Below are positions 22 through 60,370 of a stretch of DNA of 60,370 nucleotides, in pieces. The position numbers and the translations under genes were made by a program. The notes under the pieces are model-generated. The model worked only from the letters and a program-made list of their open reading frames with translations, searched no databases and was not told the DNA's origin. The DNA comes from Vitrella brassicaformis CCMP3155 (taxonomy: Eukaryota; Protista; Chromerida): assembly GCA_001179505.1 (NCBI GenBank), contig CDMY01000518.1, forward strand, positions 1-60,370, written 5' to 3'. Position 1 is the stretch's first letter. Every line of letters begins with the position of its first letter.

Positions 22-175
22 GGGAGGGTTTGCGGGACTGGGGTGTGCTGATGGGGTGGGGATTGATCCCTCCTTCCCTTGAGCCTGTTTGACTCTGCGT
101 GCTGATGGGACTGTATTTGTATGAGTATCACGGACACACGGACGAGTGTTACGGTTAATGACAGTTTCCCCCCTC
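22..175 (+). repeat. Left copy of 154-bp inverted repeat (pairs with 60217-60370)
   Basis: Bases 22-175 equal the reverse complement of 60217-60370 except at 4 positions (57, 75, 93, 140), by direct manual alignment. Confidence 0.95.
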
Positions 176-534
176 GCGACATGAGCTGGCGGACCTGACC
201 TGCATGTGTTGATATATGTGAGCAACAGAAGGTGAGCGTACAGGTGGGATGTCACGTGTGCGTGTGTTGCTTTGCTTTGCGCACACTCTGCCTTGAGGAA
301 CAACCATCGTGCAGTGACCGCTGCATGAACAAACAAAGGGTAATGAAGGAAATGAGTCCATGCAGAGTTTGTGATGCTCCTCTTACTTGCTGCCACGGCT
401 GCCTTCTTCAAAAGTCCTCACAATCGGACGCGAGCCGAGAGACCAAGTGCGAGCTTGACATTTTTCACTCTCGATTTCATGGTTTGATCACGTTGGGGTA
501 GCTCCGTAGCGGCCTGAGTGAGGCAGTCGCCACC

Positions 535-3500
535 ATGCCAAAACTTCTCTCTTGCGAGAATGTGCTGTTCATGGAAGTGGTCAAGCTGCTCGAGGCCATC
601 AAGCAGAAGCCGAAGCCCACGGACAAGATGGCGTAACCACACGCACACCATACGCAACGCAGACCGCCTCCCATGCTTGTGCAGGCAGGTGCATGCCATG
701 CCTCTGCTGTGCTGTTGTTGTGTGTGTTATCCCCTTACATAGCATTCTGGAGAACTACACCAAGAAGTTTGACGAGACGTGTGACCTGTATCCCCTCTTC
801 CGTCTGCTGATGCCGCAGGCCGACCAAGATCGCAGCGTCTACGGCATGAAAGAGTACGTCCTGGCCAAGGTGTACGGCTCGGGCAGCGTGCTCAGCCTGC
901 CAGAGGCCGAGCGCAACCGGCTCAAGAAGTTCCGCGATCCGGAGTACCAGAAGGGACGGCCAGTGGTAGGCAAGGCACGCAGATAGCCAGACAGAGAGGC
1001 AGGCGAAGAGGCAACGGACACACCACACCATCCACGCCATGCACCCTCTGTGGATGGATGGATGGTCTGTGTGTGTACAGGTTACGGGCGATTTCGGTGA
1101 CGTGCTGTATTCGGTGTTGGTCAACCGGATCCAGGCGCCCGCCAAGAAACTCACTGTCGTACGCACCCTCACTCACTCATACATCCCACCCGACGACCAG
1201 TCAAGAATGCTCTCTTCGCATTGTCGTGTCTGCAGGGTGGTTTGAACCAATTGCTGGACCAGCTGCACCAGTCATGGGACGCCAAGCAGCTCGAGAGGCG
1301 CCAGCAGGGTGACGACAAAGACGCCGACGACAATCCGGAGGGCGGTGCGGAGGCCGCCGAGCCTGCTGCCGCTGGTGGTGGTGGTGGTGGCGGTGGCGGT
1401 GGTGCGGAGGGAGAACACGTAGAGGAAGATGGAGATGTCAAGATGGAGGGGGACGGTGGTGTTGGTGGTGGTAGCAGTGCAGCAGCAGCAGCAGCAGTAG
1501 CAGCTGGTGGTGGTGGTGGTGCTGACAAGGACAAGGGCAAGACGAAACTGCCAAGGATCACCAAGTAAGTACGGGAAGCTTAGGCAGGGGAAGGCAGCGT
1601 AGGCAGTCAACTAACTGCATCCATCGCCCCTCCCTGTGAGTGTGTGCTGGTTGGTTGCAGGGAGCAGGCGTTGAGGCAGATCACCCACTCGGCGAGTGCC
1701 GCCGAGCAGAAGTGGATCGCACGCATCATACTCAAAGGCAATCAATCGTACACACCACACCGACCAATCAACCAATGGACGGACAGAAATCTCTCTCTCG
1801 TTCGTTCGTTGGTGCACTGACTGATTCAGACCTCAAGTGCGGCATCAAGCACGAGACGGTGATCAAGAGGCTGTCCCCCGAGGCCGAAGAAGAGTACAAG
1901 AACACCTCCAGCCTCAAAGTGGTCCTAGATCTCATACGCAAGAGGCGACCAGGCGACGTCGATGACACGCGCGCGCCAGTGGTGCATACCCCCACACACA
2001 CATGCAGCCAACCCTCTCACACACGGTCTGCTTCTGTCTCTGTGTGTGGTGTCTGGTAGGGTGGGATTCGCATAGGTCATTGTTGCCAGGTGGTGAGTGG
2101 CGATGTCCTCAACATGGAGCACGTCGCCAAACTCTTCGCTCCGTAAGTGCCGGCCCCGCTGTGCGCACACCCACACCCACACCCACATCACACCGACACC
2201 GACACTCCCTCTCTCTGTGTTTGGTGATGCGTCCGTCTGTGTATATACAGTGGCCCCCAGGGTGAGCAGCCCCGGTGGGCGGCGGAGCCCAAGCTGGACG
2301 GCTGGCGGATGCAGGTCCACATCGCCAAACACAAACATGACGACACCGGCAAGGAACCCGAGGTCAGTGCGTGAGCAAACAGGACCGCCCGCCCACAACG
2401 CGTCGAGTCATGCGGGCGTGCGCATGTGTGTGTGTGTTGCAGGTGTTCATGTTTGTGCCGCGCCACAAGAAGGACCACACCCAGATCACCTACGCCAAAG
2501 CGGACATCATACCCGCCCTCATCGAGAGTTCCAAGTAGGCTCGCATGCTGGCTAACACACCAGGACTGTTTGTGTACCTGTGTGTGTGTGTGTGTGGGGG
2601 GGGGGGGGGGGGGGGGGGNNNNNNNNNNNNNNNNNNNNNNNNNNNNNNNNNNNNNNNNNNNNNNNNNNNNNNNNNNNNNNNNNNNNNNNNNNNNNNNNNN
2701 NNNNNNNNNNNNNNNNNNNNNNNNNNNNNNNNNNNNNNNNNNNNNNNNNNNNNNNNNNNNNNNNNNNNNNNNNNNNNNNNNNNNNNNNNNNNNNNNNNNN
2801 NNNNNNNNNNNNNNNNNNNNNNNNNNNNNNNNNNNNNNNNNNNNNNNNNNNNNNNNNNNNNNNNNNNNNNNNNNNNNNNNNNNNNNNNNNNNNNNNNNNN
2901 NNNNNNNNNNNNNNNNNNGGGGGGGGGGGGGGGGGGGGGGCTGAAGGGTCGATGAGTTGATTGTCGATGGCGAGATGGTGGTGTGGGATAAGGATCAGCA
3001 GCGCTGTGGCGGCTTCCACTTCCAGTAAGTCCATCCACACACACCAGCACGCACAACACAAACAAACGGCTGTATGTCTGTCTGTCTGTCTGTCTTTGTT
3101 TGTTTGTGTGCAGCAAGCCGGTAGCGAATGGTGAGATGGAGGGCCTGCAGATTGCCTACTACGCCTTCGACCTCTTGCACGTCAAGAACGAAGGCCAAGT
3201 GTACCACGTCCTCGACCAACCACTCTACAAAAGACGGTACACACACACACATATACACACACACACACACATTGGGTGGACTGGACGGACGGACGGATAC
3301 AGCAGGAGGCAGGAACCCTCCATCTCACCATAGGCACCAGGGCACACGTGTGCCTCCTTTGATTGATTTTGTGTCTGTCTCTCAGTGAGCATCTCAAGAG
3401 GGTGTTGCGTGAGGTGCCGAACCGGGTGATGCTGACGCCACACAAGGTCGGTCAGTCAGTCAGCACATGCATAACATAGCCGTCACTCGATAATACGACA

Positions 3501-59821: not shown

Positions 59822-60216
59822 TGATGCAGACCTTTACAAGCAACAGGCGTCTTGGGGCTGCCGGGATTCGAAATCTTCCTCGCCGGCTAAGCTCGCATGC
59901 AGAGCGATCCCTTCCACCGCCAATCGTTTCCCCATTGCATTGTATTGCATTGAAGGGAGGACCACAGCTGTGCCGAGCCAGTCTGACGATTGATCGGTCA
60001 TTCATGAGACGACTGGTGCGTGTCAATTTGGATGGACAAAAAGATGCACACAATCAACGCGACGTTTATCATCCATCACACATACGGTCCGGTCCTTCTA
60101 CACCGCACACGAGAGTAGCAAGAGGACTGCTGGGCCGTCGACACGTTGAGAAGGGTCGCCGAAATATAAATTGTAGGCAATGATCTGCAGACAGACACAA
60201 ACCAATCCCAAACAAA

Positions 60217-60370
60217 GAGGGGGGAAACTGTCATTAACCGTAACACTCGTCTGTGTGTCCGTGATACTCATACAAATACAGTCCCATCAGCACGCAGACT
60301 CAAACAGGCTCAAGGGGAGGAGGGATCAATCCCCGCCCCATCAGCACACCCCAGTCCCGCAAACCCTCCC
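60217..60370 (-). repeat. Right copy of 154-bp inverted repeat (pairs with 22-175), truncated by the window end
   Basis: Its reverse complement matches 22-175 with 4 mismatches. Similarity ends abruptly on the inner side at GAGGGGGGAAACTG. Confidence 0.95.

Follow-up and report, generated by a model that had tools for sequence, protein, structure and literature searches.

Inverted 154-bp repeats at the ends of a Vitrella brassicaformis scaffold and the young R2-like non-LTR retrotransposon to which they belong

The stretch of DNA analysed here, referred to as the window, is the whole of scaffold G000:C518 (CDMY01000518.1; 60,370 bp) of the chromerid alga Vitrella brassicaformis CCMP3155, the ends of the window being the ends of the scaffold. 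Each of these ends lies within the last part of a retrotransposon without long terminal repeats (non-LTR retrotransposon), and the two copies stand in opposite orientation (Table 1). The DNA between them consists of ordinary nuclear genes with introns, among which a protein kinase, IFT57, a ubiquitin C-terminal hydrolase and a nucleoside transporter were recognized by Pfam on the open reading frames (ORFs) of the exons. A preliminary description, made from the letters of the window, had reported a near-identical inverted repeat bracketing it, no further copy inside and no transposase. All of this was borne out: the arms align without gaps, the element and its protein are absent from the rest of the window (BLASTN, TBLASTN), and neither a transposase nor a reverse transcriptase (RT) was found in the window by TBLASTN with the element protein or by Pfam on the exon ORFs.

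The left arm (22-175, forward strand) matches the reverse complement of the right arm (60217-60370) with 4 mismatches in 154 positions. These are located at left positions 57, 75, 93 and 140, two of them in coding sequence and two in the 3′ untranslated region (3′ UTR). The internal sub-repeats GTGCTGATGGG and GGGACTG, also mentioned in the preliminary description, occur in both arms. On the outer side, the left arm extends to base 1 and the right arm ends at base 60370; as the window is a complete scaffold, these outer limits reflect where the scaffold stops rather than a boundary of the repeat itself. On the inner side, similarity drops sharply. The abrupt stop had been described correctly, although its position has to be shifted by two bases: a comparison of 30 genomic copies places the true common boundary, ending in ACAGTTTCCCCCC, at 173 and 60219, and the ‘TC’ at 174-175 and 60218-60217 is flanking DNA that agrees by coincidence in both arms. 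In all 30 fetched loci the common sequence stops at this point, with unrelated DNA beyond it.

Both arms encode the same ORF tail, with two substitutions in copy B relative to copy A. When compared by BLASTN to the copy at locus L034, copy B shows 100% identity along its 152 nt, and copy A shows 97.7% along 173 nt of the 3′ end. Copies on C319, C687, C535, C379 and C971 also match the right arm perfectly across its 152 nt, and every copy departs from the left arm by 2-4 mismatches (4 in the case of the right arm). Each arm therefore has equally close or closer relatives elsewhere in the genome, and the two arms do not form a special pair.

Table 1. Positions of the retrotransposon ends, the intervening DNA and the assembly gaps in the window, and of the acidic insert in other loci.
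Feature	Position	Strand	Remark
Retrotransposon copy A, last 173 nt	1..173	+	Body off left scaffold end; boundary at 173 common to 30 copies
Copy A ORF end, last 26 codons (CLRGGGRGGFAGLGCADGVGIDPSFP)	2-79	+	Translation
Copy A TGA stop	80-82	+	
Copy A 3′ UTR	83-167	+	
Copy A C6 tail	168-173	+	
Retrotransposon copy B, last 152 nt	60219..60370	-	Body off right scaffold end
Copy B last 19 codons	60369-60313	-	Translation
Copy B stop codon	60312-60310	-	
Copy B C6 tail	60224-60219	-	
Unique host DNA between the two insertions	174..60218	.	No BLASTN/TBLASTN match to the element or its protein; flanks unlike those of all other copies
Six-gap span	2619..28943	.	Gaps 2619-2918, 7501-7800, 8778-9077, 15328-15627, 16486-16785, 28644-28943
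Acidic RT insert	L049:975-3389 (ORF residues 235-307)	-	Likewise at L034:7935-9848

The genome searched comprises 72,700,666 bases in 1064 contigs. A first look with the 175-mer gave 206 candidates, and all 40 that were scored turned out to be 97-100% identical. The 3′-terminal 25-mer of the element has 153 matches in the genome, compared to none for its reversed control. At least 55 of these 153 matches lie within ~700 bp of a scaffold end, most of them within 350 bp, and in these end-proximal copies the element body always points off the scaffold. The end zones holding most of the terminal copies make up ~1% of the genome. The same picture is obtained per strand: 25 of the 45 listed plus-strand matches are found at most 350 bp from a contig start, where there are no minus-strand matches, and all 20 minus-strand matches that were checked, which had been picked for looking terminal, lie at a distance of 90-700 bp from the right-hand contig end. 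Of the 30 fetched loci, 12 have fewer than 200 bp of contig left on the outward side of the arm, and nine further end-proximal copies are present among the first 30 loci. The preliminary description had named precisely this outcome, many dispersed copies enriched at contig ends, as the one belonging to a repeat at which the assembly broke, and the copy-number search that it proposed gave it.

The other end of the element behaves in a similar way. Its 5′-terminal 26-mer has 78 genome matches, and ~29 of 40 minus-strand matches are no more than 210 bp away from a contig start (mostly 60-210 bp) and point outward. Two further scaffolds carry inverted pairs at both ends, i.e., C529 (57,226 bp; 142-166 on the plus strand and 56879-56903 on the minus strand) and C135 (1,743 bp). 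Since ~3% of the scaffold ends lie in this 3′ end, about one doubly bracketed scaffold is expected by chance according to a rough estimate. In one locus (G000:C16:1-2965) two copies stand head to tail ~360 bp apart, the first ending at 1968 and the second matching from 2332.

By walking outward through longer copies, the full-length element was found to measure ~3,469 bp. It begins with TGATTGAGT(C/T)GGT(T/G)ATTTCTCGG, a 5′ end that is supported by the matches of the 5′-terminal 26-mer, and it closes with a 3′ UTR of ~90 nt that ends in a short C run and lacks poly(A). The 5′- and 3′-terminal sequences differ from each other, and a self-BLAST of the 3,469-bp copy at word size 7 returned the identity match only, thus no terminal repeats. 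Copies inside scaffolds keep the 3′ end and stop at different points outward, which yields a 5′-truncation series with copies of 174, 183, 184, 263, 322, 330, 355, 412, 460, 485, 518, 1002, 1212, 1342, 1595 and 1674 bp that all end at ACAGTTTCCCCCC. The 184-bp copy at L005 is an extreme case of such truncation. Target-site duplications (TSDs) of 10-14 bp directly surround 7 of the 10 copies that have a readable 5′ junction, i.e., one not lying in a gap; examples are GAGATCGGGA, GTTGAAGTGAAC, GTGACGGGGTGA, TGATGAAAGACT, ATAGCGAACCGT and GTTCTTGATGCAGC. The insertion flanks of the 30 copies are unrelated to one another and include genic DNA. The family is young, as illustrated by the 0-4 differences in 152 nt (97-100% identity) between its members.

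Besides 5′-truncated copies, two internally deleted mini-copies were encountered. In the first, at L019 (G000:C742, ~2,670-3,110), the 5′ ~244 bp are joined to the last 194 bp to give a copy of 436 bp, which is flanked by a 12-bp TSD (TTGTATTTTGGT) and has 9 extra bases (CCCCCCTCA) at its 5′ junction. The second, at L024 (G000:C484, ~55,740-56,120), has a different deletion junction. These mini-copies suggest retrotransposition of deleted RNAs and are possible non-autonomous derivatives of the element.

A single long ORF of ~1,100 amino acids (aa), with full-length models of 1,110 and 1,207 aa, fills the element and ends inside the arms. Along this ORF, an N-terminal Cys-rich motif is followed by the RT, a long helical linker and a C-terminal block. 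The RT is marked by the motifs RPIGVGE, LLVDASNAFN, TQGD, YADD and FLGGYVG. An acidic, serine-rich insert of 70-90 aa is present in the RT palm between TQGD and YADD and is predicted to be disordered, with a predicted local distance difference test (pLDDT) value below 50. At the site of this insert, the relatives P0011 and P0109 carry a long unrelated one. The C-terminal block starts with CxxC-x7-H-x3-C and continues with RRHD/N and a conserved series of E, D, D and K; in an alignment of 23 relatives, residues C608, C611, H619, C623, H633, E656, D672, D688 and K717 are invariant. The Cys-rich motif, PCCxCNxKGT...C...CxC.....CTxCVxCxxGxC, spans residues 29-70 in P0001 and residues 100-140 in P0011. 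No Pfam family matched it. It resembles the CXC-type DNA-binding modules and not the C2H2 fingers, which are typical of R2.

The 805-aa Vitrella ORF gave no match in Pfam, in NCBIfam or in a single-sequence phmmer search of the PDB. The assignment as an RT rests on the motifs, the relatives, a profile search and the fold. RVT_1 is present in 17 of the 23 aligned relatives and in 29 of 30 Atlas neighbours. In a profile search that started from the alignment of relatives, R2 proteins are the best PDB matches, and the profile aligns the CxxC..H..C..RRHN segment to the R2 C-terminus. The AlphaFold model of the 805-aa ORF reaches a predicted template modelling score (pTM) of 0.75, and its seven best Foldseek matches are all R2 proteins (E 1e-12 to 1e-10 over ~840 columns), with LINE-1 ORF2p trailing at E 1e-6. 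The relatives, at 33-47% identity, have a scattered distribution that takes in hemipteran insects, sponges, tardigrades and many uncultured eukaryotes.

On the basis of the RVT_1 matches of its relatives, the profile search and the fold search, the element is a non-LTR retrotransposon of R2-type architecture, i.e., with a restriction-like endonuclease (RLE). The features that define long interspersed nuclear elements (LINEs) are present: a LINE-type RT, no terminal repeats, a constant 3′ end combined with 5′ truncation, and TSDs of variable sequence. Those of the RLE group are found as well, namely a C-terminal CCHC motif with a predicted PD-(D/E)xK endonuclease of presumed activity, and no N-terminal apurinic/apyrimidinic (AP) endonuclease. 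With R2, R4, NeSL, HERO and CRE the Vitrella element shares a length of ~3.5 kb with a single ORF of ~1,000-1,100 aa, the domain order of Cys-rich motif, RT, CCHC knuckle and PD-(D/E)xK-type endonuclease, the lack of an AP endonuclease and of terminal repeats, and a constant 3′ end with 5′ truncation and short TSDs. The placement is one in the RLE group and not in a particular clade such as NeSL, HERO, R4 or CRE.

The element does not qualify as R2 proper, which by strict definition inserts in 28S ribosomal DNA, since the flanks of the 30 Vitrella copies bear no relation to each other and show no fixed target. It additionally differs from R2 by the acidic insert between QGD and YADD and by the short C-run tail. 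The Myb motif was not found by Pfam in the 23 aligned relatives; the Vitrella gene model P0010 carries PF00249, and this model may be chimeric. Non-site-specific R2-like elements have been described before, i.e., R2NS and BLAG, the latter being defined by a bipartite ‘Blag’ motif between the zinc finger and the RT (PMC7650587). When the three published motifs of BLAG were compared to 120 members of the family by blastp-short, no match was obtained below E 0.1. Only tentatively can it be proposed that the element stands for an unnamed lineage of non-site-specific RLE-type LINEs, characterized by a Cys-rich N-terminus, an acidic RT-palm insert, a C-run tail, scattered relatives, very recent activity in a chromerid alga and TSD-flanked, internally deleted mini-copies of ~440 bp; we consider this placement possible rather than likely.

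Taken together, the window is very probably ordinary nuclear DNA lying between two independent, oppositely oriented insertions of one young, high-copy non-LTR retrotransposon. The reading favoured in the preliminary description, a young dispersed element at which the assembly broke, thus stands in that the copies number at least 153, are 97-100% identical, are enriched at scaffold ends and point outward. The part of it that does not stand is the comparison to Mutator-type terminal inverted repeats (TIRs), as the arm consists of the ORF end and the 3′ UTR of an RT-encoding retrotransposon whose other end differs. What the element has in common with Mutator and Mutator-like elements is limited to the G-rich outward start (GGGGGGAAA...) and the inverted layout of this one pair. 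In contrast to these elements, it has two unlike ends, an RT and not a DDE transposase, 5′-truncated copies and TSDs around single copies, the inverted layout being attributable to two separate insertions.

Two near-identical inverted copies exactly at both ends of the sequence, with outer ends that cannot be read, are also what would be seen if the arms were the TIRs of one giant DNA element with the ~19 genes of the window as cargo, which the preliminary description had raised as well. In every copy, however, the boundary corresponding to 173/60219 is the 3′ terminus of the retrotransposon, and in short copies it directly adjoins a TSD whose partner is located at the 5′ junction of that same copy. 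As the defined boundary of each arm that faces the interior is this 3′ terminus, the 60 kb lie outside both elements. Moreover, the coding part of the arm is the C-terminal end of an RT/endonuclease ORF, the element lacks TIRs, five copies elsewhere match the right arm exactly and the left arm is 4 sites off, and neither a transposase nor an RT was found within the window, so that a giant element is next to impossible here. Scarcely more probable is that the arms represent the termini of a linear chromosome fragment, either telomere-associated or hairpin, or a recombination switch able to invert the block, as had also been suggested. The repeats do lie at both physical ends of the scaffold, and on C542 (349647-350183) the 3′ end of an element is found ~450 bp from a terminal (TTTAGGG)n array. 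Real chromosome ends in this assembly, however, carry correctly oriented (TTTAGGG)n at contig ends, as on C20, C292, C376, C421, C539, C130 and others, whereas a search of the window for TTTAGGG arrays found none, and the same sequence as in the arms is present inside many large scaffolds, with unrelated DNA around it. Interstitial TTTAGGG arrays exist too, e.g., at C571:265866-265921 in a scaffold of 331,701 bp. As for inversion, chance recombination can occur between any two LINE copies in inverted orientation, and nothing marks this pair as a switch. With regard to the nature of the element itself, the blank Pfam result on the Vitrella ORF could point to another class of retroelement, such as a Penelope-like or DIRS-like element or a LINE with an AP endonuclease. 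Against this stand the YADD motif, the lack of terminal repeats, the CCHC-RHN-D-D-K block at the C-terminus and the position of R2 as best PDB match by both profile and fold (E 1e-12 vs. 1e-6 for LINE-1 ORF2p). Furthermore, Pfam found no GIY-YIG, tyrosine-recombinase or AP-endonuclease (Exo_endo_phos) domain in the 23 relatives. Another class is accordingly very unlikely.

Some observations do weigh against two ordinary insertions of an R2-like LINE as the source of the bracket. The copies flanking C518 are unreadable past the scaffold ends, with their lengths, 5′ junctions and TSDs out of sight; that they are two ordinary insertions is derived from the behaviour of the family and not observed for these copies. 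Three bracketed scaffolds were seen, somewhat above the expectation of about one and of the same order of magnitude. At the protein level, neither Pfam nor phmmer recognizes the Vitrella ORF itself, the endonuclease segment of R2 is matched only weakly in sequence (6.4 bits), and the putative catalytic residues of the endonuclease are assigned from alignment only.

By analogy with R2 and other LINEs, insertion would most likely occur by target-primed reverse transcription, in which the target is first nicked by the endonuclease and the RNA is then reverse-transcribed by the RT from its 3′ end. Such a mechanism would result in a constant 3′ end, 5′ truncation and a TSD of 10-14 bp. The Vitrella assembly was made from Illumina HiSeq reads with velvet (k=75) and SSPACE, using inserts of 550 bp and 1 kb and mate pairs of 3-8 kb (PMC4501334). 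The assembly probably ran ~90-350 bp into each long copy and then stopped, because the copies are near-identical and longer than the short-insert libraries; the two copies flanking C518 are accordingly presumed to be long. At C518 this would have happened on both sides within one and the same stretch of the element, with the two copies facing in opposite directions, leaving an apparent 154-bp inverted repeat. Scaffold breaks induced by repeats in short-read assemblies are the same case without any difference: a young, high-copy repeat exceeding the library inserts halts a scaffold roughly one read-length into the repeat, and two ends lying in one repeat mimic terminal repeats.

The window itself contains six assembly gaps, every one of exactly 300 N. 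Four of the six interrupt G or C homopolymer runs that extend on either side of the gap, and one is located between a C-rich stretch and a CA repeat. The last gap is flanked on both sides by the same 29-mer, GGGGGGGTGGGTGAGGGCGGTGTGTGAGG (window 28615-28972), and may be spurious, reflecting an overlap between the ends of two contigs, or else may conceal a short tandem repeat. The six gaps look like local read dropouts, although their flanks do not prove continuity across them. The nearest gap is at least 2.4 kb from an arm, so that the terminal repeat is unaffected by them. Among the genes of the interior, an uninterrupted ORF of 531 aa (52601-54196, minus strand) contains a protein kinase C-lobe at residues 14-127 and, downstream of it, an IFT57 domain at residues 180-507. 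The two domains may be genuinely fused, or one gene may have an exon that reads without a stop into the next gene.

The bracket around C518 is thus best regarded as a by-product of a short-read assembler halting in young repeats, and should be taken neither for a giant element nor for the end of a chromosome or a switch for inversion. The terminal-repeat findings on C529 and C135 can be dismissed likewise. One LINE family explains at least 55 scaffold ends in Vitrella through its 3′ end and roughly at least 29 through its 5′ end, and in this way marks joins for re-assembly. In the genome paper of Woo et al., Vitrella LINEs were given only as a bulk figure of 632 kb (PMC4501334). The family described here is a young and probably still active, R2-like, non-site-specific LINE in a close free-living relative of the apicomplexan parasites.

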